NCBI GenBank assembly: GCA_965285935.1 | Contig: OZ260666.1 | Coordinates: forward strand, 19,530,001 to 19,594,000 | DNA: 64,000 bases | Source of the DNA: Ophelia neglecta | Taxonomy: Eukaryota | Direction of reading: 5' to 3' | Shown: positions 23,311 to 64,000 of the stretch, in pieces | How positions within the stretch are numbered: the first letter of the stretch is position 1 | How the letters are laid out: each line of letters begins with the position of its first letter | The notes under the pieces: generated by a model | What the model was told of the DNA's origin: nothing | The model's input: only the letters and a program-made list of their open reading frames with translations | Databases searched by the model: none | Program-made: the position numbers and the translations under genes

Positions 23311-24900
23311 TTATACATATCGTTTTATCCAGTCAAGGTACCGAGACACTCGGGTAAAGATCCCGGGTAAATCACACGTCTCCGGCCCACGGCTTGTGAT
23401 CCCGTATACTGTGTACCTGCCATCGCTATCTTCACACTGCAGAGGGCTCCCGGAGTCACCCTGTTAAAATAAAAATAAAATAGGAAAAGTCCAACATTAG
23501 GATATTTCGATGAAAAGCCGTTCGAAGCATATCAATAAGCGAAATGTCGTTCTATCCCGACCAAATAACACCTTCTCTTGACTCCACAATTGAAAATCAG
23601 ATGAAGAATAGCAGAAAATTCAAGTCACTCATATACACATGACTAGATAAAAATATGACATTTGGTCAAGTATATCTAACTTGCCCGTGAGCAATGACTG
23701 AACGCCAGTTCTATAACAGGACCTTGATTTTGCAGTTTATTCTCTTATTGATGTTAAGTATTAGAAAATAAACAATATGAATTATATAAATTTGATCAGA
23801 AACTGAGGACTTACGAGGCAAACAGTTCTGTAGTTTGTACCAGCACACATAGTGTTTTCAGTTAACTGAGATACATACAGTCTGTTGCATGATTGACGCT
23901 CCAACAATGGTACACGTGCAGCTTGCAGTATATTCCTGTTACCAGTTCCTGAAAAAATAATTTAAACAAAATGGTTGATTTTGTTTCTTTTACAAAATGC
24001 ACTGCCTTAGTGATAGCCCTCAAAACTGAGAAAGATAATGGCATTTGGTTATATGTTACCTAAAGGAGCTAGTCATCTTACTATCGTAGGTTTATTTCAG
24101 AATGAAATCCAACATAATTGCAATTTGTACTAATCGGAAAACGACAACATTGATACATGAACAAGCGGCCCACCGTAAGTTAGACCCCATCCTGTGGCCA
24201 CGCAACTAGTCCCTGGTGGGGGTTCTTTCCCAGGGGAAGGAGGCAGACAGATAGGTTGTATGTAATCATTCCAAGTGACAGGAGAAGCAAGGCGAAACAG
24301 CGCCAAATCATTGTCGAACCCGGGAATGTAGTTTGGGTGCTGTATGGCACGGTCAACAGGTATAATACGTTCATGGGAGTCAGGCGTGCTTTGCCTGTGC
24401 TGACCAACTGTCACCGAGTATTGGGAAGTGGATGTACATCGCCTAAAGATAAACCTCCTAGTTATAAAACACAGTAAAACAGGTAATCCAGAGTCATACC
24501 GACCAACATTATCATGGCCATGAACATGTGATAAAAAGGCACCCTTTATCGATTGTCATTACACAAATGGTTATGGTTTTTAAAGTATAGTACATTTATT
24601 TAGTAAATATAAAGTATGTCAATGCACTAATTAGCTTATATATAATAATAAAGGGTGTTACGTACACACAGTGCCCGGCTGAGAGGAGCCACCTGTCTGA
24701 TATCAGCGCTCCTCCACACTGGGACTTGTGTGTGCGATTTACCTGGCACTCTACCATAACCTGCCATGGCCAGTCCCCGTACTCTGCGTCATAACCATTA
24801 ATAATCTCAGCTGGTGCAGTCCCATTCCGATCAGACTTGCGTCTATCAGTCAGGGAGGCCCCCGACGGCCGGTTTTTCACAGGCAAGCCACACTGTCTTC
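23311..24900 (-). CDS. Gene A C-terminal active S1 serine protease domain (4 exons)
   Basis: CGL..PAE|[16 protein letters not shown]; LSAGHC (His57); DNDLALF (Asp102); GDSGSPL (Ser195); [14 protein letters not shown] stop. Confidence 0.94.
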
Positions 24901-27900
24901 CTATTTATCAGGAGACAATTATCACATTGACTAAGAGCAGTAAATATGTCATTCATGCAGATTTAAGTGAACTATACAGTTCTCTTTCATACACAAGCGC
25001 ATTATTTCTCACATCACACCGCGTGCTGTAGATGTCGTGTGCTTTTTGGTTCTGCTACAATTACGTTGCTGACAACTGAATATGATGTCGGCCATTACAG
25101 TATAGCGAAAGAATGACACACATTAACAACATGCTTGAGTGTATAAACATTATTCATTCAAGGTATTTATTGTTTATCAACCAATTTTGTAAAGTTCCTT
25201 AAACTGGGGCTATAATGAATAAGCAAAAATAGTGGACACAAGGGAGACCATTGCTCGAAAATTATCTATTCATCAGGCGAACTGATTAGGTACCGCCAAC
25301 CACATGAACCCTAGTTCCCTAACTGTTAATATTGAAATTGCAATGAAATTAATTATTAGAATCTTTATCGATATCACATGAAATGAGAATTAATCCACAG
25401 TTTTCTATGATGCCAGTCAGGGCACAAAACAAAAGAACTGCCGGTCCACATAGGACATGTAATTATTTAACACAACATATGGCTAGAAAAGAAAAGAGAG
25501 TAAGATATTTATAATATACTAAGAAGTTACTTACCACTATTACAGATGTCTCCGGAGAATCCAGTACCTGAACAATCACAAGAGTACGTCCCTAGTCTCA
25601 CTATACATCTTCCTCCGTTTAGACATGGTCCCGAAGAGCACACATCTTTTGCTGCGATATAAGTACATAGGGCATGTAAGCGGTTTTTGCTATACAACAC
25701 ATGCGAAACATAGTTTTGGATTTTATGGTTTGCAACAAGGGTCTACATGAACATCTTTAGATGGATGAAAGTCAATTGGCATGTAAGTTATTCATTTGAT
25801 TTTACAAAACAGTAAAATAAGTTCATTGAGTATTAAATGTTTGAACGGCGTCTCTGAATACGACTTAGAGCAACTAGAAGGTCAATGAAATAGGTGCTTG
25901 GAAAAGAGCTCCGCCACTTGCTTATTAGCAGAATATGCTGCTTCGTTTATCTATATTGGCGCTTGTGCCCTCATTAACATTATTAGAACATTATTAGAAC
26001 ATTATTTTATGGTGATAGACATACAAGCTGCACTGAATGTTACATACTACTATAAGTATACGAAACCTGTTTGACAGCGATCCCCAGTGTAACGAGTGTT
26101 AGAACAATCACAAGAAGCAGCTCCTGCCCTCACTGTACAAACACCTCCATTTTCACACAAGGCGGAGGTACATTGTTTGACCTCTAAAACAAAATAACAT
26201 ATGGAATAAGAAACAAAATGTCGTTGTGCCAGTGCACCTATCGAAATAGTACATATATTAACTACTCAGCTTTAAACTCAGATATTGGAGACACTGATTA
26301 ACCTGATAAAAGTTATTAACGCTGTGTGATGACACGCGTCTTTATTTTGGTTTAAGGAGTTGTCAAATCAATATATAGAACGTCTCAAACATATTGATAA
26401 CCATTTGTTCGCTCTGCCGGACACCCGTTTGCGGTTAACAGACTATCCCAAAGATTTGCTCCAATAATCAAAAGTCAAATGAAAGTTTTGAAAGGCGTTA
26501 AACTGGTTACCTTCAATCCAATTTACAAATCGAGAGACCTTTGTAAAAAGACCAGGTGCGTATAGACATGTGCCAAATAAAGATCCTGGAATGCTGGCAA
26601 TTCCATACGCCACATAACTACCATCGGCCCGGGAACAATAAAGTCCTCCTCCATAGTCTCCCTTATAGTCAATACAAAATAAGTGTCCAAATAAATTGCA
26701 TACACACTAGTTTGAATTTTAGTTAGGCACTGGTTGGGTTATAATATGGCTCTAGAACGAACTCGTGACAACGCTTTATTATATAATATATTCAAAATGA
26801 ACAGTGCACATTGTGTCTATTTCCTCTGAATATTGTTGTGAACATACCAGGTGGCTTCTCAATATCTTAAACAGTTGTCCTATTCGTTGCGTGCTCATAA
26901 CCTTATTCATTAAACGGTGTGATATGTTATTGTTAAAATCATTAAAGTAAACAACAATAAAGACATGTAATTACGTCACAGACTGAACGCGTGTCATCGC
27001 CCGCACACATCATGTTGTCGTTGACATTGCCTTTATAATACCTGGGCTGATTACACACAGAGCGAGGGACCAGGGGAAGGACGACTTCTTGAAGGAATCT
27101 ATCACTTCCCGTTCCTACAATTCCAGATAAAGCTCATTGTGGCCTTAATTCATATTATATGATTACACATAGTATGCAAACAATGTGACGCTATATTGAG
27201 TAAGACATATCAAGGTAGCCGGATTTATTCTTTCCCTTGTTAGTTCTTGCTCTCTCTAAAACAAGTATGAGGATGGATTAATGTGCGTGGTATAAGGTGA
27301 TTTACTTAAGCTCTTCGCCTTTTTAGTTCTTGCTCTTTCTAAAACAATTATGAGGCTGTTTTAGGTGATTTACTTTAGCCTATAAGTGTGACTCACCTTC
27401 TGTGTCTCCCCAGCCTATTGAATAACAAGTAGAACCAGCTGGCGGTTCTTCGCCCGCTGCCGGGAGGCATATGGGCCTGACGTAGTTGTTCCAAATCATG
27501 GGAGTGGTCAGTCGAATCACCGCTATATTACTGTCCAGGTAATTCTCAAGCCCTTTATAATCTGGGTGAATGAAATACCGCGACACTACAAAGGTTTGCT
27601 GGTGGGAATCAAGCGTATCCAAGTCGTGAAATCCTATTCCAATTTGAATTTTGGATGGCGTCAGATCGTTCCCGGCATTGTCTTTCCTAACAATATAAAT
27701 ATTATGTTAGTTACAGAATTCGTTGTTTTAGTGGGTGAAGGGCACGTCCGGAAGTGACTCTCTGAGAACCGCGGATATTTATAGCACGCATGACGAGAAA
27801 CCAGAAAAAAAGCTAGACTCATTTAATATGACATGTCGTTTAAATATCACAATTCGTTTAATGATGTTTCGATGGCGAAAGAACTATAAGTTGATAAAAT

Positions 27901-30900
27901 GAAAGTATATGATTATGTCCTCTAAGACACAAGCGTATTCATGAGGGAAAATCCACTCCTGAATTTCTAATCAATTATCAAAGGAAATAAACTTACATGC
28001 AAAATGCTCCAGTGAGTATTAATTCCGAAGATATGATGACCCCGACACATTTGATATAATATTTGCCATCCCCATATTTATCGTAGCCGATTAGCACGTT
28101 CCATGGCCATTTTCCGTACGAACTGTCTTGTCCCCCGACAATACGACCGATCATTGAAGTCTGCGCAAGCGCTGCTAACCCGTTTATTTGTCTTTTACCA
28201 CAGGAAACGGCAGTTGCTCCTTAAAGTATCAATGTGTTGATGACTGTTTAAGTAGGTCAAAACAATACTTAGTGATCAAGTTGTGATAAAGTATTTTCTG
28301 TATTCAAGCGATTAGTTTCATTTTCGTTAACCATTAAAGCATATCTGATGAAGATTTTAGTTCCTCAATTTTTAATAAAAAAAAACAATATGTCAGTGAG
28401 AATTTTAGAAGAGTCTTTCTGCAACTTGTACGTTATATACGTAAATCGTGAACAAATCAATCGATCACATTTTTCTGCCGCGTGTAACTTATTTATAAAT
28501 ATCGTGAATAAAATCAATCTAATCAACCAATCAATCACAAACCCCAATAGTATTGCGGCTAAGCCTACACGTGAATTTGCACCACGATTAATTTGTTTGA
28601 ACTAATCAAGTAGGATATTAAACCTGCCCATTGCTAAGACAAATTGCTTCAATAAGGAGAAGCTCACAACCACTATTCGTATATAAAACGCACTGAGAAA
28701 GTATAATTATTATTAGAATTGGTCACATCTAGGAGACGAGTATCCTGTTAGAGAGCAATCACAGTCATCCGGGTTACCATTAACACTACATAACCCGCTT
28801 TTAAACATGAGTTTGGTGTCTGCACTAAGAAAATGACATCTGCGTAGGTTTATTACGCTTATTCTCCTGCATAATTAGTGAACCCCGCGGCCCATAACCA
28901 ACTGCATGTAGAATCCGGATCGTTGTAAGGCCTGGGCGTGGAAGGGTTTGGATGGGGCTATTTCATTGCTCCAATGTTGGTCATATTTTAATACTTTAGA
29001 ACTATATACCTGATGAGAGATAATAAAAATAAATTCCTATTACATTGATCGACACTCGTTGGTCGAATGCCTTTATAGACAAAAAGGGGAAGATAAACGG
29101 AACAGAAGAATGGCGCCATACCGTCCTGACAGTTTAGACCAGTGTGTCCTGTACCCGTGCAGTCACAATAAATGGCGTTTCCATTACTGGAACATGTGCC
29201 ACCATTTGAACAAGGATTTGGAAAGCACGGACCGTTGCCTGAAAGTAAGTAGTGTTTAGCAGGTAAAATTCGACAGCGATATTCTGATCATAACATTATA
29301 AAAGCGATATTCACAATGGCTTTTATTCCTGAAGCGGTGTTTACTTAACATGTTACAGTACAAGTAGGTTTTAAGATATCATTGGACGATGTGGTATATA
29401 TTTATACTTAGTACATTCACAAAAACATATGTCACGCCATCAAAACATAGTCAACAACTTTGTATCTTGACTGATGCTTCCTGTGTGATTTACGCGTTCG
29501 TTTCTGAAAAATGAACATAGGGGATTATTACTCACCGAGTTGACATTGGGATCCCGAGTAGCCGGTACCAAAGCAGTCACACGTAAACGAGACGGGGTCC
29601 AGGTTGATTAGACAAAGCCCTCCGTTTAAACATGGATTGGACACACAGGGGTCGATAACTAATTGTGAAAGACGGTCAATATTCAAGCGAACGAAGAGTA
29701 ATGACTTGCAACGGATACATCTAGTGATATGAAAACGGACTGTAAATTGTTCAACTTCGCCTTGATACACAAAGGTATGTTTGAATGTACTAGCACTTTG
29801 AGAGGGAAGCATTGGTATAGGGTCTGATAATTAAAATAAATACCTTGAAAGCCACATGGGAACGCAGTAACCGAAATATCATCGAGGGCAATATCCCCAT
29901 CGTAAGCCCTCCCACGTACACCTTCCCAAGTAAGCTATATTCCACAAAGCAAACAGAGAAGAATAAGCACAAAGTAAGATCCATGCTAATAAACCAGGTT
30001 TAATACATACTTACGACAATTATTGTGAATAATATAAACACAACCCATTTCGTATTTGATGAAAATATTTTCTTCAGAAATATGCACTAAGAAGAATTAT
30101 CAAAGCAGGTATGACTGCATTTATATCTGAGGCTTCGGTATGAATATACGTCATAATAACGCAAACCTACCTTCTGACCGGAAGTGATAGTTATTTGAGT
30201 ACTCCATTTCTTCCAGGTATTCCCTCCGTTCCCTGAGGAACTCCAATTGTACCTCTGCCCTGGACCGTCCAGGTAAAATGCCAGTCGCCCAATCGACGAA
30301 CCATACATATGATATGCAAACTCCACGCACCAAACGGAACTCCCGGTCAACAAGGGCGTACTTAACCTTGCGTGAACGAAGAACATCAATATTGCACATG
30401 ATTATGACTCATTTCACACTTGTATGATATAACTGCTGGGGTCTCACTCCACACGATTTAGAAAAGGCACCGCATTTTTCCAATTAAAAGCTTACTTTCA
30501 GTGTGGTTTTAAAACATAGGGAATTTATCATCTAACAAATTACCTTGCGTTGTCTCCTTGTCGTCTATTAGTTGCCTCTAAGTATATGTAATACTGTGAT
30601 CGTTGATATCCAGAGTCAGGGCCAGTATTTTGGGAGGGAGTACGTCCTGAGAAGCGAATCCAGTCTAACCGGTCGGACGTATCTTGAACTAAACTGCAGA
30701 AATCATCTTCAAAGTCGCATGAATGGCCAGCTGCGAAGACAATTTTGGCTTTACATTAATCTTTCTGCGGGAAAGGGATGCAGATCGAGACCGTAAAAGT
30801 TGCAATTAAAGTTTGCTTTAACGCTAGTCGAAGATTAAAGAAACATGTTGTCATAAAAATGAAACCTAGACTCAGTCCTAGTGTGTATTTGATTTTATAA

Positions 30901-39900: not shown

Positions 39901-42900
39901 AACCACATGCACCTATTTTCACGGAAATATCGTCCAAAGCGATGTCCCCATCATACGCAGTCCCTCTCACACCTTCCCAACCAATCTTTAGGAGGAAAAT
40001 GTTTGAATAATAAAACATTACAAATTAGTTTTGTTGATTTTAAAACGCTGTCTCTACATACTATAAGTGTTGATAGAAATTATTTATATGTTGCTAGGAA
40101 CGGAGAACCCCAAAACGTATGGATCCATAAAACAGAATTCAGAATTGTCCTCCTAGTCATATGTACATCTAATAAGGGCCAATGTCCGAGAGTAAGCGTC
40201 TAGGAGGTAATTGAGCCTCTGCAGTGTCTCCGGGGTAGTTGGTACTGACGGAGGGCATTTTTTATACATTCGCTTGAGGTCAATGCCTGATCATGTTTTT
40301 TCTGGCAATGTACAACAGTTCTATAAGCATCATGTAGCTTCGGATAGGGAGTTTACTGCCCATATTAAATGGATCATCCCCACATTGCTATCCCAGAAGA
40401 AAGGCTACTCCTCAACGAGTTTTTTAAAGTTGTATTTATTCCACACAGAAACATCGCTTGTCATGTATTAAAATCATAAGTGAGAAATCTTTCGGGGAAT
40501 ACAGAAAACTCTTTCGAGGTATTTTTAAAGTGTTCTACAAATATTTTTTCTCATGGGAAATAACAGATTCTTCCAATGATGCCTCTTAGCTAATAGATTA
40601 TGCAAAGGTAATTCTATTATATGATATTGCTTGAAAAAGAATTGAAGAAAAGAGAAGGTTTCGTTCTACGGCGTTATATCATTTAACTAGATGGCACATA
40701 AATCAATGAATCTTATATCTAACATAAAGCATGCGACATAATAAGGGTAGTAAACCTATTGCGTCCGATAGAAATTGCTCTATATTGATAATACTTGGTT
40801 AGATTCACCTTATTATAACCGGACCCTAAGTTGACTGTTGTGGAGTGGGTTAGCCACGAAGACCCCTTGTCACCGCTCTCACTCCAGACGACAGACCTGG
40901 TGTTCCCGGATTTCTCTTTATACAGTCTTAGTTCTCCTACTGTGCTTCCATACATGTGATAGGCGAACTCCACACAGTAGGTGTTCCCAGACAGTGTTTG
41001 GGTGCTGATCCTGCATTGTAAAACATAAGGGTACAAGTCTACACGTTCCTTGTATTTTTCTATATTGGTATCGAACAAAGTAGATTTTAGTGGCACGCTT
41101 TCTGCGTCCTCGGTCCTTTCATGCGGATTACGACAGGGGTCAATCCTAGGCCCGCTACTATTAGTGGCAAGGTTACAAGTAAATAAACTTACTCTTAACG
41201 TTATTTAAGTAGTATTTAATATCATAAAATTATGATATTTAGACCAGGTAAACTTTACATCTCACGTACTTTTAAATGATCAAAATACTATGATTGAGTC
41301 TACAGAATTTCTGGGAATTGTTATCGATTCATGTTTAACCTGGCGTCAACATATTCATTATATTAGTGGGAAGGTGGCAAGAGGCCTCGGCATGTTTATA
41401 AGCTAGGAAGAATCTTGACAAAAATACTCTTTTGTCACTATATTATTCATTTGTATTTCCATACTTCAGTTACTGCCCATAGCTATGGGGCATTGTTCGT
41501 ATTAGTTGATATTCGTATTATATTGATCCTTTGTATAAACTACAGTAATGAGCGGTTCAGCTGATAACCGTCTCAAAAAGAGATACGCCTTCTCAAACCT
41601 TCTTTAATAAGATGTGTATTTACCAATCCAGGTGTTATATAAATATTCCCTACAAATGTTTATTTACAAGGCTATTAGTGGAATTACACCTGGGTGTGTT
41701 GTCTTATCGTTCTCGTTTAATTGCAATATTTATAACTATGGCACAAGACAGTCGTCTTACATGCACGTTCTCAAAATAAAACCAAATGTAAAGCTTCGAT
41801 GTGAAACTTATCAAGCTATCCTTTCATATAACACTATATTGGACACGATTGATTACAATTGCTCAATTAATTGTTTTAAAAATGAATTAAAAGCCCTGCT
41901 CCTAACCTCAGGTTAGACAACACGAGATTTATGTAATATTGCCCTACGGCGTTGGAGGTCAGTAGCTCTTGTAGGTAAGCTTCGGGGGATTCTGCTCATT
42001 ACTTACTGGGCAAGATGGCCAGTCGCACTCATGTTCACTTTAGTATATTGTTATATCAGATTCTTGTTAGAGGTGTTCTCTTTTGCATACAGATTAAGAG
42101 CCACGTTGCTGTGCGACTGTAAATGTGTTAACCATTAATATTATAAACATTCAACTGAACACTGCGACAGTTCTTGCTTGCCGCGTATTAATGTACTTTT
42201 TGGAATGCTGTAGAACTATCTTGGGGCCAATAAGCTGCATTAGGTTCACCTACCCCTTTTGTAACTTTGTTACTTATTTCTGTTGAATTGCAATATGTTC
42301 AACTTGCATATGGCAATAAAGAGATTATATTATATTTTATTTTAGTAGGATTATTACCAACCATTTAAGGAGCTTGAAACGAGTACTGATAAGCCCCTTA
42401 TTTTAAACTACGTCATAGCCATTGCGTGTATTGTTATTGATTTCGCTTTGTCCACCAGGTATACATTTTCTTTTGATTATTCTTTGACAGCGTGGTTGAG
42501 CCAAGACAAGCAGAACCTCGGTGTTAAAAGTACAATTTTGAAATAAACAATACCTGGCGCTCTCTCCCTGGGCTTTCGAGGTCGCCTCGATGTAGACGTA
42601 GTAATCTGTCCCCCCGTGGCCGGAGTCTGGTCCCGTCCGAGAGGACGGTGTTGGCCCAGAGAGTCGATTCCAATCAAAGTTATCTGTTGGATCCTGAACA
42701 ATGTTACACGGATTTTCGAAGTCACATGTGATATCTGAAACAGTGACAATTCAGGCAAAAATATATTGTCAAATACATCATTTTCCATTTTTAAAGTATT
42801 TCAATATTAGAGCCTTAATCATGATGGAAAACTCTGATTAGTTTTAAAATGATAGCAATATGCCCCAAGTCAACTTTATATTTGACACTGCTTCAGGGAC

Positions 42901-50116: not shown

Positions 50117-51530
50117 TTATACATATTTTCTTATCCAGTCAAGATGGGGAGAGACTCGCGAAAAGATCCCGGGCAGGTCACAGTGTTCGCTCCCACGGCT
50201 GACGATACCGTACACCGAGTATCTGCCATCACTATCTAAACATTGCAAGGGGCCTCCCGAGTCACCCTGTAAGGAACACAGGAAGTGTGTAAGAAGAAAA
50301 ATCACTGGAGCCACACACATGCACAGTACATGGTAAACATTATTCAAATGTAAAAATGAATTATTTGTACTTTAGTCCAGCTCAGATCCGTCTTCCAGTC
50401 TAACTGATCTGGTCAGTGCAATTTCACTTTCAATTTGCCTACCAGACTATTGACTGCTGTAAGTGTTTGGAATATGATTCACATTGCAACAATCGACAAT
50501 CACTTGGTTACCTTGCACACAGTTTTAGCATGGGTACCAGCACACATATTGCTGTCCGTTAATTCACCGCCATACCAATAAATACGTCGACACAGTTTCT
50601 GGTCAACCAATGGTATATTTACTGCTTGCAATATATTGGATCTGTCAGTGTAATTTCCTGGAATAATAAATCGCGCTGTATGCCCTCTGACATTTGTTTC
50701 TTCATTAATTCAATACAGGTTAATATTTCCTTAGTCATTAAATCTTACATTACATCAATAGTCATTTAAACCTATCGGTTGTTCAACGGAAATTTATTGC
50801 CCACCATGGAACAAACCCCATCCTGTGGCCACGCAGTTGGTTCCTGGCGGGGGTTCGATATCTGGAGATGGCGGCAGACAGACGGGCTGTATATAATCCT
50901 TCCCAGTGACAGCAGATGCAAGGTGAAACAAAGCCAAATCATTGTCAATAGTTCGTGGAGTTTCTGTGTAGTTCGGATGTTTGATCACGCTGATTACTCG
51001 TATGCTACGTTCATAAGTATCGTACGTGTCCAATCTGTACTCTCCAACTTTCACAGTGTATTCACGAGGGGAGTTACATTTCCTACGATTCATAAAACCA
51101 AAGTAAGGAATTCTCGTTGGAAGATCAATATAAAGCTTTCTCAGCAAGTGTTTTAAATCTAAATACATTAACAATAGTGTCCGTACATAAATGTAAGAAC
51201 ATATCTCTTACTTTAGGCCTATTGACTTCCTATTTTCTGATTTATGCTAATGGAGGAAAATCATGAGAAAGTAAACAAATAGGGTTGGCTCGTAAAAGTA
51301 ATAATGAATGACTTACGCGCAGTGGCCGGCTGACAGCACCCAACTTTCTGATATCAGTACTCCTCCACACGTGAATTTGTTAGTGCGATTAACTAGGCAC
51401 TCTACCAGGACTTGCCAAGGCCAGTCACCGTACTCTGTATCATAACCATTGACAAGCCTAGCTGGTGTTGGTCCGTCCTCCAGTGAGGGCTCCGATGACC
51501 GGTTCGACATTGCTAAGCCACAGCGCCGAC
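50117..51530 (-). CDS. Gene B C-terminal active S1 serine protease domain
   Basis: PAR|[16 protein letters not shown]; LSAGHC; DNDLALF; GDSGGPL; [14 protein letters not shown] stop. Confidence 0.94.
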
Positions 51531-54500
51531 CTATCATTCAAAGGTTGAGTTTGATTAGATTGATTTGGATAATATTCACAATATGAACTTAATATATATC
51601 ACTAGGGCAAATAACAAAAATACTTTTTCTTCAGCAAGGTGACATTGACACAAGAAGGTAATTTATGTCAATAGTAAGATATAAACACGACTTGGTTGAC
51701 TCAAAAATAAGAACCAATATCATTTACAAGAAAGAACACATCTCAAATGCTAATTATGAATAAAAAAAACATCGAAGAAATGTTAAATTATAGTAATAGC
51801 AGTTTCTAAGTTCCTGTTGGAATCGATGTACAAATTTGAGGCAGGTAAGCTTATTATATTAAAATAGACATGATGCTGACCACTATTGCATGTTCTTCCG
51901 GAGAACCCTGTGTCTGAACAATTACAGGAGAAGGACCCCTGTCCAACAACACACCTGCCTCCGTTTAAACAAGGAGCCGAGGAGCATGCGTCAATGGCTG
52001 GAAAGTCAAGTAATTTTCGTTAATTACGGTTTGCTGTACAAAACACATGTAAAATATAGTAATTTATGTTAATAATTTACAAAGTGAGGTCGGCCACTAG
52101 AAATCGATCTTAGAAATGTATTGTTGCTTATAAAATCGTGCAAATTATACAATCGCACAACGCTTCTTTTGGATGATTCAATAATATACCGCATGTCGTC
52201 AACATGCGAGAGATAGAAGGATTAGAAGGATTTCGACTACAATTGGTTGTTTTCACTAGCCACGACGACATACCTGCCGCATTCACGAGGATGCTCTATT
52301 ATACCCAATTAGAATAAATCTATCATTGGTAGACAAAATAACTTTAAATAGAACATAAACAATGTACCTGTCTGGCAGCGATCTCCTGTGTATCGAGTGT
52401 TTGTGCAATCACAAATAACAACATTATCTCGCACCTTACAAACACCTCCGTGCTGACAGAATGTAGACGTACATTGTTCCATTTCTGCGGGAAAATAGTA
52501 ATAACAATGATAATTATTAGCCACAAAAATTAGCAATAAAGTAATATCGCATATCTTTTCTTTATATGTCCAAGATAACAACCAATAACAAGACGGTCGT
52601 TGTATACAAGATGGCTTTAGGGCGTGTTATGAAACACTGGTTACATTTTGTACTACGGTATAAACACCTCTGTAAACGCATAGTTAATAAAGGCCAGTTG
52701 CCAATAAGTAAAATCGCGACAATTTTAGATTGGGGGTACATGCAGGTCTTCATTAACGTTTTAGGATCGCCCGGGCAGCCGGGAAAAATCAAGTATTGCC
52801 ACTGATCCACCCTCCAATTTCCGTTTGCATAATTTCAAAAAAAGGCCGTCATTTGCCATACCTGCTCCACTTTGTGCCAGGCACGAGTTAAGCATTTTCA
52901 TTTTCCGTGTCTCTTTATTGTTTCTTAATAAATAATCTTATTTTCTAATAGATTCAATACCGCCATGTTACCAATGTTCATTGTATTGCAACCATAAGCC
53001 CGTGTATCTGAGCGTTTAATTTCTTAAAGACTTGAACATAATACTGATGATTAAACGTCTGACACATCTATTATGTCCATAAAAACAAATTTGAGACGTT
53101 TTTTGAGTCAGGATATTTTTTCACATTTATAACTTGGTCGTTTGAAACTAACAATGGAAATTTAAGTCCAGACTTGTACCTTTTATTAGACATTAGGTGT
53201 TTGTTAATTGGGACCCCATGCCCTTGCGTTACCATCAACTAGGTCAACTATCCAAGCACCTCTGCCATTGTTCCTCATACTCAACCCAATTATTATTATC
53301 GTTTAAATGCTTATATTATTATTCCTATTATGATTGTTAATACGTTCCATTTGTTACCTTCAATCCAATCAATAAACCGAGAGACCTTCGTAAAAAGACC
53401 CGGCGCATATAAACAGGTTCCGCCAACAGTTCCTGGCACGCTGGCGATTCCATAGGCAACAAAACTCCCGTCGTCTCGGCGACATTGCAAACCTCCTCCG
53501 TAATCACCCTGAAACAATATAGTTAATTATAACTGGCCATATACGATAAACGTCCCTTTCCTCTGATTACACATATTTTTAATGTACCGTTTTGTACAGA
53601 ACCTACTTATTAGTTATATTATCAAAAACGGCATAAAAGTTAAACCTGATATTGAATAAATGTATCATGCTCAAGCTACATTGACAACACAACACTGCAC
53701 GTGGAACCAATAATACGGTAACGTTTTTGTGGTAAATATATTACTAACATGACGTGGAACAGCACCAAGGTTCATACATACAACACCATTCATTATTACA
53801 ACACCATTCATACATACAACAGTTAACTTTGAGTGACATATACAAATGCCCAATACCAAATTGAAATGTACACCATTCTATGTTCCAAAATATACTAGAG
53901 GGATTTTTTCTTTCTTCTTACCACACTGCCTCTCTGATTGGGAAATCGGGAAAATAATTTATCGTATAAAGCACTTTGGGCGAAACCATAGAAATTATAA
54001 CTACGTCACAAATGGATCTGTTTCTGTCTCCTGCGCACATCATGTTATCGTTGACATTGCCGCTATAATACTCAGGCAGGTTACACTCATATCGAGGGAC
54101 GAGAGGAAGGATGACTTCTCGGAGGATCCTATTGCTTCCCGTTCCTACAAATAACACATTTACTTCATTGTTTGAAATTTTAGATGCTAGCATGAATGCG
54201 AGAAACGAATTAAATGTATTCGGTTAATTTTGCCAATGTAACCGAGTAGGGATGTTTATTTATTAGGTATACTACTACCAAACGAAAGGGCGAAATGACA
54301 TAACGTACCTGACTATATCAAATTGTGCTTTAAGAACTTTAAAAAGGTTAAGTATAAAATTTGGTATCACCTTCAGTTTCTCCCCAGCCTGTGGCATAAC
54401 AAGAAGACTCAGAAGGCGGTTCCTCTCCTTTTGATGGCAGACAGATCGGCTGGACATAGTTATTCCAGTTCAATGGTGTGGTAAGTTGAATCATCGCAAT

Positions 54501-57500
54501 ATTACTGTCTAAGTAATTTACTAGTCCTTTATAATCAGGGTGAAGAATGATACGTGAAACAGAATATGTTTTCTGGTGAGAATCAAGCGTTGACAAATCG
54601 TGAAATCCTACGCCAATTTGACATTTAGATGGTATCAGATCCCTCCTGGCAATAACAACACGAGGTTAGCAAACAACCGTGTGACAGGGAAATTGGTGAA
54701 AACATGTGGACTAGGAATGCTTTTTATTCACATAACGCTGTCAGCTGATGAATTCATTCACTCAGTTAATCCGATTGAAAACAGATGAAATCACATTACT
54801 GAGAAACAATATATTTCTATTTTGTGGAACACTCAGTTAGGGTAACCGCTTGTTATTACCCAATATTGCGACTTTATTTCGAACATATTTACCATGAATA
54901 CCATTGATTTAGTCTGTAGAAGTACTAACTACATAATACTTACACACAAAATGCACCAGTGAGTATAAACTCCGAGGAAATGATAACCCCGGCACACTTT
55001 ATATAGTATGTACCATTCCCATATGTGTTGTAGCTGATTAAAGCGTGCCAAGGCCATTCCCCGTATGAACTGTCCTGTCCTCCGACAATACGTCCTATCA
55101 TAGACCCCTCCCCGGATCCTGCTGCCTCGTTCATTTTAATTTTACCACAGGACACGGCAGGTGTTTCTAAAAATTCCAAAGTGTTATATAAGGTGAAGTT
55201 TTAGGTACATTTACAAAAAAAAACGTTTGCCACACTACTTGAGAAAAAATGTTTGTCTTGCACATTGTGAAAAAATCCACCAAATGACTACACTAAAAAT
55301 TATACACTATATGTTGTGGCAAATCTCCAAGGAAGTAAATCAATAACCTATTATCCTGTTAATTTGTCTTATTTAGTGCCTGCAAAAAAGGATTATAAAT
55401 GACCTCACAGAAAGAAAAAGTTTGCAGGGGAATCATAAGAAAAAAAGTTGTTTGGAGGAGGCAAAATTATGTTTTGAAAAAAAAATCTCACCCCCCCCTC
55501 CCCCTACATTATCAAATGGTCGACCCCTAAGCATGGTAAGATGCTGTGCAAAAAGAAATATGCACAAGCGAAACAAAGCTCACAAAGGTTAGTTAGACAT
55601 GTTAGGCAAAATATATTGCATCATTATTGTTTGTCCCCTATGTCGACGAATTAGATGCTATTATGTGTAAGAAAGACAAACAATGTATTGAAAATACTCA
55701 ATATTCAAGTTAACATACTTTCTAATTTAGTCAGTACCAGATGCACAATAATTAATATATTGGACATTTTCTCACTCGGCCCTCATTTTGTACTTTTGTA
55801 CTGTGGATTCCTTTTTATCGTATAATGTAACATGGATGAAAGGGGCGCTAACTTAATGATACTTATATCGATTGAAAATAAATAAATTTCATTTCGACTG
55901 TGGCTCTACCATGAAGGCATCTTAAAAAGTCAAAGTAGTTTATACTCTAGATCCACTGAGCCCGGCTTCCCGAAACGGTCTCCGATCTTAATAGGATTTA
56001 TATCAGGACTAAAAGGGTTTGATCGGTCTAACTTGCTAAGTTTCTTCTTTAAATCTCGATTTGATCTTATACCGAGCCAATGTTGTAGTATACTGAATCC
56101 TGTGTAATGAGTAGGCCTCCGAAACACCAAATAACGGTCGCAGCTTATCATACTTATAACCCCCCACCCATGTTAACTCCCTGACTAGTAAAAAAATATT
56201 GACATCCAGATCACCACCAACACCTTTTTAGATTCTATAAAGAGTAACCTACATAAATATGTAAAGCAGTGTCCCCTCTCCTTTGACATCTCCCAGATAA
56301 TTTATTTCTATTGATAACCAGGCCAGGCTCACCCAAATATGGATACTTTCGTACTTTTAAAAAACCGCCTATTCATACTCCCAGGCTACTAAACATCCAG
56401 ACCACCGCCAACCAACAACTATTATTTCTGATAAAAATAAGCTATAAAAGTATTCAAACTGTGGCACCTCTCATATATTAACTCCTTGATATTTTGTTAT
56501 ATTGGCATTAGACCACCGTCACCTCAAATGTGTTTACTCTCATCCCTACAACCCACCACACATGCTAACTCCCAGTCGTCTAAACAGAATTGACATCCAG
56601 ACCACCGCCACACAACACCCGTAAATTCTGAAATGAGTAACCTGAATAAATATAAAAAAAAAGTAGTATCTCCTCTAGGTTAACTCCCAGACAATTTATT
56701 TTACTTCAATCAGACCACCGTCACCCCATATCTGGTAACTCTAATAATTTTAACACACCACCCATGCAAAGTGCCAGACTTCTAAACAATATTGAAATCC
56801 AGACCAAAGCAACCAAACTACATTTAATTCCGACACGACTTACATCATTGAATAATAAGGGAAGTGGCGCCTCTCGTATGTTAATTCCCAGACAACCTAT
56901 AATCTATATTGACATTCAGACCACCAAAACCCTTGCTGTCTTTCCTGTCATACTACCAAATCTCCCGCCATGTTAACTTACACAGTACTCAATCTAATTG
57001 ACATCCATACCACCGCCACAACAGAGCTTTTAATTCTGATAACTGTAAAAAATATTAATATGCAAAAAGTGCCATCTCCCCAAGTGTTAACTCCCAGACA
57101 ACTGACTTATGTTGACAGTCAGACCACCATCACCAAAGATGTGGTTACTCTCATACTTATAACCCACCACCCTTGCTAAATGGCCAACTACTAAACAATA
57201 TTGACATCCAGACCACCACCATCCCACATATGTTATATCTATAAAAAAAACCTATATAAATAAGTAAAACAGTGACACGTCTCTAATGTTAATTCCTTAT
57301 TTAGTCTAGCAGGGAGATAAATAAAGAACCTCTGCATATCTAACCAATCCTATATCGTACACCCATACAGCCATTAAAAAGTATAATAACAGGAGTGTAT
57401 ACCTGGCAGACCAAGCCAAATTACTAATTAAGAAGAGTCCATTGATCGGCTCAAAAGTATCAGGTACCAGCACCCACTGGCCCGCACATACATCAATACA

Positions 57501-60500: not shown

Positions 60501-63418
60501 TTTCACATTTGTTTTAGAAAATGGAATGACTCTTGGAACAAAACAATAGTTAATAGTAGATCAAACCAAGCACCCTCTCATCACTCCCTGATAATCAAAA
60601 TGGAACCACTCTTATCTATTATTCGGTTTGTGTGAATATCATACAGCTTGTTTTTCATATATATATGCTTATAGCGTGATATAGTAGTGTGTCTATGATC
60701 CCTACAAAATTGGTATAGTTCTACCTGTAACAACTTACTGATAACAAAGTGAAATGGAATGTTCTCAAATTTGGAATTAATATAAAAATTATATGAAACT
60801 ATCCCTACCTATTTGAAACAATTAACCGTAAAATCGACAAACTATGGTTGCTAATTTAAATCTATGGAGAAGAAGTACTAACATTAACTCATACATAACA
60901 TGCAAGAATCTTGCCACACAAGATATTTCAGACAAACAAATTGAAACCTTTTATCGGGAAAAATGTGTATTGCGTCATATTTGTAATATACAGCTTTGCG
61001 AAATAGTATACAACTGATGTACCAAGTTGACATTCTGATCCAGAATACCCTATGTCCGAGCAGTCACAAGCGTAGGAGTTGCCTTTTCTCGAGCAGACGC
61101 CACCGTGAAGACATGGTCGTGAAGCACAGGGATTGTCCGCTGCATGACAAATAAATGATTTTGTTTGAGGATTGTAACTAACTAAAGCAATCCAGTCCCC
61201 GTGCAAGATGTAAAGCAAACCCTGATGAACTCAATATTGGGATTAATATAAATATGGTAATAAAGAACAAGACATATATGTAAATATACAATGACGGGTT
61301 CGTGAATCTAAGGGTATGGTGCGAAAAGAGTACCTCTCGCGTCTACAAAATGTTTACTGTGCGGGAGCTTTTGACTTGTTTATTAATGTTTGTGGGCTGT
61401 GTCTGCTGGTTGCTGATTTAATGCACTTTTCATTGATGTGGCCTTGTCTGGCGGGTATACACTCTCTTGTTTACTTACCAAGTTGACATTTCGATCCAGA
61501 ATATCCTGTTCTCGAACAATCACAAGAATAGGAATTGCCTCTCTTAACGCAAACACCGCCATGAATACACGGCTGGGAATCACAAGCATCGTTTTCTGTA
61601 TGAATAATAAACTTGCATTAAGAAGAATGTAACGAAATAAATACCCGAGTACCGTTAACTGTATTAATTTATTCTTGATCATTAATAACAATATCATTTG
61701 GGAAACAAATATGTAAATACAATTTCGTTTGTAGTACCTCAATGCTAAATACGAAAACAAATGTATTAAGTAACAATATGTCCTTCATCAAAAAAAAATC
61801 TACTCCTAATTTATTAATCTGAAGCTTCCAACTGACATATTGCCGGTTTAGAAAAGTTCCAGCTGGTAATCAACCCCTAACATGCAGACAAAGTGAATAC
61901 AGCGCGTTTTTACAAGTTTGCTAACGCATTATTTTATCTTGATCAGGAGTGAATTATACATGGACGATAGAAGTGTCCTACCAATATCACACCGGGGCCC
62001 ATTGTACCCTGAATTGATGCAGTCACAAGTATAGGACTGCCCGTTACTTAAACAAACACCGCCATGCAAACAAGGGTTCGGTGCACACGGACCAATTCCT
62101 GTCAAAAATGGAATGCATATTTAATGATTGTATTGCGGCATTTTTGGTTTAGGGAACAATATTGTAAGGAAATACTGATGTTTTAACAGCGGTTTTTATA
62201 CTTGTCAACAATAAAATATTTTTTTACACCGGGAAATTCTACGAACTAAATTAACATATGTGTATGATAGTCGGTGAAGGTGGTCAATTAAGTTCTAATA
62301 TATATGTTTATATAACCTTGAGAGCCGCATGGTCCAGAATCCACAGTTATATCATCCAAGGCCAAGTCCCCCTGGCCACCACTCCCTCGCACGCCCTCCC
62401 AGCCAATCTGCAGATATTAAAATATTTGATGAACAACTTTGCAAATAACTAGAGCAAAACAATAAGCATCGCGTGTAGTACAATATATTGTGGCCTATTC
62501 CAATGTTCGGGGTAAAACAAATGATAATATTCTGACTTAATCATGTGCCATTGATTTGCAAGAGGTCACTTTTATATTCTCGTACTCCTGCTCAGTAATC
62601 GTTGCCTAATTCAACTGATTGGACCTTAATCACTAATAAGTCGTGGGGAAGCGCGCTCGGCTCATTCCCTCTTGATTTTTTTCAGTGGTATCCGAGCTGC
62701 GCACTTCTATATTCCAGTCACATGCGGTTCAGACAGGGATTTAGACCCTCTTAACCATTTGTCTCGTTTTGCAAGCTTCTTGATATTGCGTTAGTACTAG
62801 TAATCTAGCAGTTTATGAGTGTATTCTCGCATATTGTAACACACTCTAAAAAAATTTAACAGGTTAATATTATTGTAGACTCGTTGCTTATTTTATTTAG
62901 ACAAGTACTGATTGCTGTAAACTGTGGCATGACACGGCAGATCTATTTTCTGACAAATCAGTGTACTATGTTTTTCAATGTCTTAAAAAATAGTAATAAC
63001 GCGACACTTTGGCATACGTCCCTTTTATAACGTACCATGAGACAAGTAAATGTGACTATAGTTTTTGCTAACGAAAAAAAATGGAAAGCCATTGCCTTTA
63101 CTATTATGGCATGTTTATAGAGGCCACCGTGTAGGTAAACCCTAAACGTAGGAATCAGAAAGTCTTAAACTTAGTTTACCAAAGCTCTTCTGGTCACCAA
63201 CACAGATTGAACTTACCTTGTTATATCCTGCTCCCAGGGTTACAGTTGTGTAGTACGTTGACCAAGACGTCCCCTTGTCACCGCTCTCACTCCAGATAAC
63301 AGACCGAGAAATCCCGGGACCCTCCTTGAATAGTCTCATTTCTCCCATCGACCTTCCGCGCATGTGGTAGGCAAATTCCACACAGTATGAGTTGCTTATT
63401 AAAGGTAGTGTCATTAAC
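50117..63418 (-). CDS. Gene B (5'-partial): paralogous MAM/EGF polyprotease with inactive + active S1 domains
   Basis: Exons: 63418-63217, 62407-62317, 62098-61982, 61595-61479, 61139-61023, 59912-59726, 59098-58903, 58246-58156, 57983-57861, 57695-57579, 55166-54944, 54645-54371, 54144-54005, 53508-53358, 52484-52368, 51997-51881, 51530-51317, 51082-50805, 50657-50512, 50266-50117. All introns are GT-AG and phases are compatible (1056 codons after the first split codon); it ends WIRKYV-TAA. The first visible exon is the middle exon of a MAM domain, so the gene continues beyond 64000. Confidence 0.9.
51881..52484 (-). CDS. Gene B two EGF domains between the protease domains
   Basis: 117-nt exons [21 protein letters not shown] and [20 protein letters not shown]. 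Confidence 0.92.
53358..55166 (-). CDS. Gene B catalytically inactive serine protease homologue domain
   Basis: GR|[14 protein letters not shown]; LTGAFC; DSNIAMIQL; CDGDYGGG. These are the same three triad substitutions as in gene A. Confidence 0.92.
53771..53821. repeat. 18-bp tandem repeat x3 (ttcatacatacaacacca)
   Basis: Directly visible; it explains the MNGVV repeats in the spurious ORF 53671-53859. Confidence 0.65.
56148..57296 (-). repeat. Second copy of the ~200-bp-monomer higher-order repeat, inverted and circularly permuted, in gene B intron
   Basis: 56148-56819 is the reverse complement of 19050-19716; 56837-57296 is the reverse complement of 19756-20214. Confidence 0.88.
57579..59912 (-). 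CDS. Gene B MAM domain + two EGF domains (counterpart of gene A MAM5 block)
   Basis: [10 protein letters not shown].., [49 protein letters not shown]; exons 187/196/91/123/117 nt. Confidence 0.92.
59972..60205. mobile_element. Degenerate PIF/Harbinger-like MITE in gene B intron
   Basis: CTG|ggtccggttctggaaggagcctt ... aagcgcttgcaaaaacggggcc|CTG; 3-bp CTG duplication; the TIR matches 16 of 25 positions. Confidence 0.45.
61023..63418 (-). CDS. Gene B partial MAM domain + three EGF domains
   Basis: [24 protein letters not shown] (202 nt), [15 protein letters not shown] (91 nt), three 117-nt six-Cys EGF exons. Confidence 0.9.
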
Positions 63419-64000
63419 CTAGGAAACAAATTCGATAAACACAGAATACAGTTCTAACTTCACACTGGACTGAAATAGCTTTAATAATATGATTAATAAT
63501 ATGTAAATGCTCCTATGTTATATCTGTTAAATAATTTTGAAGACTTATTTTTGAGTGATGTTGACCTCGTTATGATCGCGTTATCGGAGTTCAGGCCGCA
63601 ATTTTTTAAATCGATGTGTACACGTGTGTAATCTAATGAAATGAACATTCTACGAAATCAAATGAGAAGCCAAATATGGTATTAGTTACTTTGTGATAAC
63701 GGTTAGGGAAATTATTTACATTCGTGTTCAAATATTTCAATATTTCAATGCTAAAACAACCAGGATGGATATCGGAGACGACGTGGTCCTATTCGTCACT
63801 ATTTGCTTTTATATTGTATGGCAGCCATGGACGAACAAATATACTTTTTCTTTAGCTTGTTTTATGGCAATGATATTGGGTTTCATAATAAGACTGGAGA
63901 TACAGAATGTAATGACAAGTGTAGGCAACATAGATAGTGGAGCAGACTCGGTGGGCTGTCCATCCGGCTTGTGGTTCTTTACTATTATACGAAAATAACA

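Follow-up and report, generated by a model that had tools for sequence, protein, structure and literature searches.

A 64,000-nucleotide stretch of DNA from Ophelia neglecta (assembly GCA_965285935.1, contig OZ260666.1, positions 19,530,001 to 19,594,000; hereafter the window) carries two genes, A and B, each encoding a trypsin-fold (S1) domain without a catalytic triad, preceded by MAM and EGF modules and followed by EGF modules and an intact trypsin domain. His57, Asp102 and Ser195 of this dead module were lost long ago, yet purifying selection acts on the module no less strongly than on the active domain next to it. We consider it probable (roughly 0.6) that it represents a non-catalytic serine protease homologue (SPH), matured by cleavage and acting as a disulfide-tethered binding, cofactor or competitor surface within MAM/EGF mosaic genes. 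It appears to be one of the cassettes from which a family of extracellular MAM/EGF mosaic genes is built, a family that is lineage-specific and tandemly duplicated. The locus lies on contig C9; coordinates are window positions on the minus strand unless stated otherwise, and gene limits were deduced from the sequence (Table 1).

The dead module of genes A and B

Gene A is read as MAM exons, two EGF exons, the four exons of the dead domain, two further EGF exons and the four exons of the intact trypsin domain, ending in a stop codon; gene B (59931-50120) has the same module order. The first-pass annotation had described replacement of the whole triad, and this is confirmed: gene A has Phe57, Asn102 and Tyr195, the motifs located on the minus strand of gene B give the same states, and the active S1A triad His57/Asp102/Ser195 is absent from the dead modules. 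It had also reported that both genes keep SMIGR↓IVGG (the arrow marks the predicted scissile bond), Asp194 and the Cys1 (CGK)/Cys122 (PICLP) pair, and that LTGAFC, DSNIA and CDGDYGGG are common to both. All of these were found again, CDGDYGGG existing only after splicing. The second domains of genes A and B keep the active-domain hallmarks SAGHC, DNDLA and GDSG. Gene A has the ten cysteines of the pairs 1-122, 42-58, 136-201, 168-182 and 191-220, none of which varies among the seven genomic copies described below; the pairing is assigned by homology.

The interval originally noted, 26511-28219, coincides exactly with the outer exon bases of the four-exon module, whose exons sum to 223+290+140+151 = 804 nt with phase 1 at both ends. 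Shuffled modules of the EGF type are usually phase 1 at both ends as well, and the phase-1 donor of the second upstream EGF exon of gene A reads as compatible with the phase-1 acceptor of dead exon 1. The splice sites of that exon are tttaag/GA (acceptor) and AT/gtaagt (donor), the slash marking the exon boundary. Exon 3 of gene A ends in SVCD at a phase-0 donor (GAC/gtaatt) and exon 4 follows the acceptor ataag/GGAGACTAT; both sites are canonical, and only this splice forms CDGDYGGG in gene A. All four dead exons match the Pfam Trypsin profile (PF00089) with E values between 6e-4 and 3.8e-15, well beyond chance, over profile positions 1-43, 47-132, 136-176 and 164-220 for exons 1 to 4, respectively; exon 1 alone scores 20.1 bits, slightly below the profile cut-off of 20.6.

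Further exons of the same kinds surround these genes. Genes A and B are immediately preceded by additional MAM and EGF exons (30700-42750 and 61021-63453), and the phase-1 donor of an EGF exon ending at 31224 matches the phase-1 acceptor (cttcgcag/CT GGC CAT) of the first MAM exon of gene A. Genes A and B may thus encode multi-MAM proteins of far greater length; a clear signal-peptide exon was not seen. Two near-identical MAM units (36387-36870 and 38722-39206), about 2.3 kb apart, suggest a very recent local tandem duplication within the MAM/EGF array. An EGF-like open reading frame at 28874-28716, between the second EGF exon and the dead domain of gene A, has only four cysteines (the first two are missing), no obvious donor and no counterpart in gene B; rather than a third EGF module of gene A, we regard it as a probable decayed relic exon.

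Seven copies under constraint

The 762-Mb genome was searched with dead exons 1, 2 and 4 as queries. Exons 1 and 4 each gave exactly seven matches of the dead type at E <= 1e-9, all on one 0.22-Mb stretch (C9:19.55-19.78 Mb): A, A' (L001), B, B' (L002), C3 (L003), C4 (L004) and C8 (L008). A' is an inverted duplicate of A on the opposite strand about 130 kb away, with 92-98% identity per exon (tblastn). In the exon-2 tree the seven copies form one clade (support 92/88), apart from the active domains and from the dead first domains of loci L005 and L006, and their branches are shorter than those of the active domains of B and B'. Some contigs from the three public sequencing runs found for the locus, all of one sample, carry a 6-base omission at 28163, equal to the two-residue shorter linker of A' (L001 2874-3086); they probably derive from A' or from another allele aligning to gene A at the 95% threshold, and are not independent support.

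The residues that replace the triad differ among the copies. Position 57 is occupied by F, F, F, Y, Y, R and S, position 102 by Asn in five copies and Asp in two, and position 195 by Tyr in five and by Phe and Asn in one each (aromatic in 6/7); A, A' and B have the trio F/N/Y, and the other four Y/N/Y, Y/N/Y, R/D/F and S/D/N. By comparison, Ile16, Gly18, Gly19, Gly193, Asp194, Ser214, Cys1 and Cys122 are present in all seven, residue 15 (P1) is Arg in six and Leu in C4, R↓I(V/A)GG is kept in six, and the P2-P1 pair is Gly-Arg in five (Ser-Arg in C8, Gly-Leu in C4). The first-pass annotation had named loss of R↓IVGG or Asp194 in orthologues as a sign against its proposal; among the seven paralogues Asp194 was kept throughout, and the arginine was lost in one. 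Across the seven copies 78 of 242 ungapped columns are invariant, including Cys1, Ile16, Gly18, Gly19, Cys42, Cys58, Cys122, Gly193, Asp194 and Ser214. What these alignments indicate as conserved is thus the absence of catalysis, the aromatic residue at 195 (6/7) and the activation apparatus, and not the F/N/Y trio as such.

Ratios of non-synonymous to synonymous substitution (dN/dS) were estimated by the Nei-Gojobori method, summed over exon-wise codon alignments, the deeper pairs being saturated at synonymous sites. For the dead domain dN/dS was 0.20 [0.09-0.41] between A and A' (dS 0.12; active domain 0.28), 0.17 [0.11-0.26] between B and B' (dS 0.48; active domain 0.22), 0.17 between A and B (dS 1.0; active domain 0.20) and 0.16 between C3 and C4. 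A value near 1 had been named in the first-pass annotation as refuting its proposal; the 0.17-0.20 obtained between paralogues denotes purifying selection. Values of about 0.2, not above those of the active domain of the same genes, also argue against decay. Within the motifs the copies differ by synonymous codons (TCA/TCT, ATC/ATA, GGT/GGA, GAC/GAT and TAT/TAC; CGT/CGC/CGA for Arg15 and GAC/GAT for Asp194), which points to constraint at the protein level rather than to recent gene conversion. Loss of all three catalytic residues, together with the fact that only DNA-type runs were found for the locus, might suggest decaying relic exons or an enzyme still active through other residues. We regard this as extremely improbable, since all unsaturated pairs give dN/dS values of about 0.2, no stop interrupts any of the 28 exons, canonical GT-AG sites stand at conserved positions in the copies checked, and the exon-2 branches are short; moreover, a nucleophile-base pair cannot be formed from Phe, Asn and Tyr, and the residue at position 57 is variable (F/Y/R/S).

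The copies also differ in what follows them. In A, A', B and B' the active domain comes next on the same strand and in the same order, with phase-compatible exon ends, which would allow a single chain with two S1 domains. C4 and C3 share one MAM/EGF array that runs into LDL-receptor class A (LDLa) repeats; the 4.5 kb between these and the next gene contain no protease exon. C8, the most divergent copy, lies between EGF runs, and further MAM/EGF units come after it. The searched flanks of C3, C4 and C8 thus yielded no exon of an active protease. A second, independent lineage of dead first domains occurs at L005 (2617-4158) and L006 (4807-7447), with Ala57, Asn102 and Ser195 or Thr195, each followed by an active domain of the Asp189 type. 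The death of first domains would accordingly have occurred at least twice, or stepwise.

Table 1. Positions of the exons, motifs and further copies discussed in the text (window positions, unless a locus is named).
Feature	Positions	Strand	Remarks
Gene A MAM exons	30755-30543, 30401-30090, about 29934-29830	minus	Pfam MAM matches
Gene A upstream EGF exons (n=2)	within 29830-29531 and 29287-28991	minus	Pfam EGF matches on both
Gene A dead domain, exon 1	27997..28219	minus	Pfam Trypsin E = 6e-4; linker, Cys1, SMIGR↓IVGG, Cys42, LTGAFC
Gene A dead domain, exon 2	27397..27686	minus	Pfam Trypsin E = 3.8e-15; DSNIA, PICLP with Cys122, Cys136, GWG
Gene A dead domain, exon 3	26975..27114	minus	Pfam Trypsin E = 1.9e-5; Cys168, Cys182, Ser189-Val190-Cys191-Asp192
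Gene A dead domain, exon 4	26511..26661	minus	Pfam Trypsin E = 2e-4; Gly193-Asp194-Tyr195, GGG, Cys201, Ser214-Ile-Pro-Gly...Cys220, Gly226, NWIE
Gene A motifs	CGK 28202-28194; RIVGG 28145-28131; LTGAFC end 27999; DSNIA 27535-27521; PICLP 27475-27461 (Cys122 at 27469-27467); GDYGG 26661-26647	minus	
Gene A former triad codons	Phe57 28004-28002; Asn102 27529-27527; Tyr195 26655-26653	minus	TTT; AAT; TAT
Gene A EGF exons between dead and active domains	26265-26053, 25742-25530	minus	By sequence and EGF-matched equivalents in B'; Pfam scan on upstream EGF exons only
Gene A intact trypsin domain, 4 exons	23314..24904	minus	CGL...PAE↓IING, SAGHC, DNDLA, GDSGSP, Thr189, Arg215; stop after DWIKRYV
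Gene B dead domain, exon 1	54944..55166	minus	CGK, SMIGR↓IVGG, LTGAFC
Gene B dead domain, exon 2	54371..54645	minus	DSNIA, PICLP
Gene B dead domain, exon 3	54005..54144	minus	RSICD
Gene B dead domain, exon 4	53358..53508	minus	GDYGGG, DWIE
Gene B motifs	RIVGG 55092-55078; LTGAFC end 54946; DSNIA 54509-54495; PICLP 54449-54435; GDYGG 53508-53494	minus	
Gene B intact trypsin domain	50120..51537	minus	PAR↓LVNG, SAGHC, DNDLA, GDSGGP
Active-domain activation sites	24666-24900 and 51322-51534; L001 6202-6216; L002 5998-6012		Sequence
C4 and C3, in tandem	L004 2048-4362; L003 2159-4660 and 1-149; L010 2929-4047 = G000:C9:19693501-19710500	minus	C4: R57/D102/F195, Leu at P1; C3: Y/N/Y, Arg at P1; at least three LDLa repeats after
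C8	L008 2262-4842 and L012 = G000:C9:19617500-19633000	plus	Ser57, Asp102, Asn195, TSR↓IAGG

Relation to other protease-like domains

Exon 2 was compared by phmmer with 1.84 billion representative proteins and gave 4524 hits at E <= 1e-3. The nearest named matches were elastase-2A-like, ovochymase and TMPRSS9-like proteins of scattered animal groups; this library holds no close relative, the best identity per domain being about 43-44% (local BLAST). A further homologue search with exon 2, confined to proteins of 0.55-1.75 times its 108 residues and hence blind to full-length proteins, gave no match. None of the ten top matches scanned with Pfam contains MAM, with CUB, Fz or SRCR found instead. 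In a crude regular-expression survey of the top 150 matches, 35 of 263 S1 domains lack Ser195, and 14 of these 35 have [RK]↓[IV]xxG upstream, so that retention of the switch in dead domains is not rare. Searches of the CC-licensed PMC and bioRxiv literature listed no paper on a MAM-EGF-SPH-EGF-SP architecture (SP, serine protease); PMC2527998 names MAM and trypsin domains only as separate expressed sequence tag motifs.

Among structures, exon 2 is best matched by trypsins, and exon 4 by proproteinase E, the procarboxypeptidase A-S6 subunit III and pancreatic elastases (1pyt_C, 1fon_A, 1bru_P; E 5e-7 to 1e-6). The alignment with proproteinase E and the elastases is gap-free through the 214-226 loop, and Ser189 and a residue other than Trp at 215 read as common features; unlike the dead module, however, these proteins keep the catalytic serine (GDSGG) in the alignment and are single-domain digestive zymogens. 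The first-pass annotation saw an insertion in the 214-220 loop; it is one when the loop is compared with trypsins or with the cis active domain (a 4-residue gap), but not in comparison with proproteinase E and elastase.

The same annotation had likened the module to the beta chains of HGF and MSP. HGF depends on cleavage at R494↓V495; the site that binds MET, around the pseudo-triad Q534/D578/Y673, takes its shape from a salt bridge between V495 and D672 (PMC5344233, PMC11399343). The likeness lies in a dead S1 domain with Tyr195 beside Asp194, in Arg↓Val/Ile cleavage, a disulfide-tethered two-chain form and a salt bridge between the new N-terminus and Asp194 that shapes the binding site. Differently from the dead module, which has Phe57 and Asn102 and stands with MAM and EGF modules, HGF as described there has Gln57, a retained Asp102, and PAN and kringle domains. 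As kinship the comparison fails: exon 4 matches plasminogen with E = 0.002-0.003 and the MSP beta chain with E = 0.009, against 5e-7 for the elastase-type zymogens, a similarity no closer than to ordinary proteases; no PAN or kringle exon is present, and of Gln57/Asp102/Tyr195 only Tyr195 is common. On these differences Tyr195 is a convergent feature. Could the module nevertheless be a signalling ligand like HGF, or serve its own chain's protease as an obligate allosteric cofactor? Tyr195 beside Asp194, the retained activation site and tether, and the phase-compatible active domain that follows in A, A', B and B' would fit such a role. Against it stand the lack of any closer sequence relation to HGF/MSP, the missing kringle and PAN exons and the different residues at 57 and 102; in addition, three of the seven copies have no protease exon in cis in the searched flanks, so the module does not require a cofactor role for a downstream protease. 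On balance we find this proposal very unlikely.

Clip-domain SPHs such as Manduca SPH1/2, Holotrichia PPAF-II and Anopheles CLIPA are likewise non-catalytic S1 domains and require cleavage to act as cofactors or regulators in extracellular cascades (PMC6901238). The dead module differs from them in the EGF exon directly upstream, in its linker with a single Cys, in belonging to another phylogenetic group and in having no phenoloxidase link. Membership in the clip-SPH group was rejected: there is no clip domain, the upstream modules being MAM and EGF.

Among the closest parallels are polyproteases (human polyserases, Xenopus ovochymase, insect Nudel and the Tenebrio polypeptidases), in which one chain combines several S1 domains, as may be the case here, some of them without a triad and with non-protease modules before each unit. 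Typical partner modules are CUB in ovochymase and a transmembrane segment, LDLa and SRCR in polyserase-1. In the genes described here, by contrast, MAM and EGF take the place of CUB, Sushi, LDLa or SRCR as partners, the dead domain precedes the active one, and no residue of the triad is left. For the Tenebrio polypeptidases an activation site was predicted before each SP or SPH domain, an interdomain disulfide was proposed, and the SPH units were suggested to be dominant-negative binders (PMC11172050). The dead domains of human polyserase-2 were reported to be without the RIVGG motif (PMC1435904), unlike the R↓I(V/A)GG seen in six of our seven copies, and the tandem domains of human polyserase-2 and polyserase-3 are not separated by cleavage (PMC1435904).

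Proposed cleavage gating, its alternatives and the surrounding cluster

By analogy with the way in which insect SPHs, HGF and the dead domains of polyproteases are described, we propose the following mechanism. An Arg-specific protease of the Asp189 type would cut after Arg15; the activator would not be the protease in cis, which has Thr189. The new N-terminus at Ile16 would pair with Asp194 and order the activation loops, and the aromatic residues at 57 and 195 would fill the former active site. The matured domain, disulfide-linked to its MAM/EGF stalk, would then offer a binding, cofactor or competitor surface, and it would remain covalently continuous with the modules that follow; in A, A', B and B' these are EGF and the active protease, in the C3/C4 gene EGF and LDLa repeats. 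The linker lends this proposal some support. Between A and B the residues P5-P1 are identical (5/5), as against 2/12 in the remainder (Fisher p = 0.003, post hoc), and SMIGR is invariant in four copies; such a pattern is to be expected of a cleavage site that a protease recognises.

Several points limit or weigh against this reading. The pairs compared for dN/dS are paralogues within one genome, not orthologues. In S1 domains generally, Ile16, Gly18-19 and Asp194 belong to the best-conserved positions, and finding them retained is weak evidence that the cut actually takes place. P1 is Leu in C4 and Phe, Ser or Glu in other proteases of the cluster; Arg is thus not required everywhere, and folding might be the reason why the motif persists. 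Within the module, change is fastest in the 215-226 loop: 4 of about 13 A-A' replacements fall in these 12 residues (binomial p = 0.002, post hoc), as would suit a binding site under diversification or, equally, a relaxed S1 pocket no longer in use. Finally, a search for RNA runs gave only the three sequencing runs mentioned above, none of them on record as RNA; their contigs cross the introns and contain no joints, and these runs are therefore DNA.

An uncleaved scaffold or binding spacer in MAM/EGF mosaics, in which R↓IVGG and Asp194 are kept for packing of the fold core, would accommodate part of this: C4, with its Leu at P1, is equally constrained (C3-C4 dN/dS 0.16), the module recurs in arrays for which the search gave no exon of an active protease, and the uncut tandem domains of polyserase-2 and -3 provide a precedent (PMC1435904). 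However, SMIGR is invariant in four copies despite a diverged adjacent linker, the Gly-Arg pair at P2-P1 persists in five of seven copies, with Arg codons that differ between copies, and the reported absence of RIVGG from the dead domains of polyserase-2 shows that the motif can be lost where cleavage is unused (PMC1435904). We hold the scaffold to be unlikely, though credible enough to be kept in view. Rather more doubtful is a decoy or dominant-negative role, in which the dead domain would bind the activating protease, serpins or substrates and keep them from the active paralogues, whose cascade would be damped. A bait-like activation site and a surface resembling a substrate cleft are kept, and the cluster offers many active paralogues with different P1 residues; yet a decoy would be a sub-case of a cleavage-gated binding module, and with these data it cannot be told apart from the cleavage-matured surface that we favour.

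The proteases of the cluster vary in their own activation sites: PAE↓IING in A and A', PAE↓IVNG in B', PAR↓LVNG in B and E↓IVGG at L009. At L005 and L006 the second domains have F↓IVGG and the dead first domains S↓IVGG and F↓IVGG. Trp215 is present in nearly all S1 proteases; the cis active domains of genes A and B have Arg215 (ITSRG and IVSRG; 23314-23463 and 50120-50269) and Thr189, and with Thr189 in place of Asp189 they are unlikely to cut after Arg. A preference of these domains for acidic P1 residues, which is speculation, would fit their own Glu↓Ile sites. The second domain of L005 carries Asp189 (GDSC/QGDSGG) and is, by inference only, a candidate for the Arg-specific activator. The varied P1 residues look like an address code for who activates whom. 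Extended to the whole 0.6-Mb cluster, this would give a self-contained extracellular proteolytic network in which Arg cuts gate the dead modules and Glu or Phe cuts the active domains, the dead module being an independently evolved ligand or cofactor switch in the style of HGF and its fast 215-226 loop diversifying partners; we put this forward as a conjecture that is more probably wrong than right by a wide measure.

The concept of cleavage-switched dead protease modules is already established, and it is the MAM/EGF setting that is unusual. For the present, the module mainly illustrates, in well-preserved form, the familiar theme of SPHs inside polyproteases. If the dead module is indeed cleaved and then binds, a protease fold would have been turned convergently into a binding switch gated by proteolysis in an animal that is neither vertebrate nor insect, and the seven paralogues would form a natural series varying in the former catalytic residues and in the 215-226 loop. 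The different P1 residues of the neighbouring genes could, moreover, show how a cascade is rewired by gene duplication.

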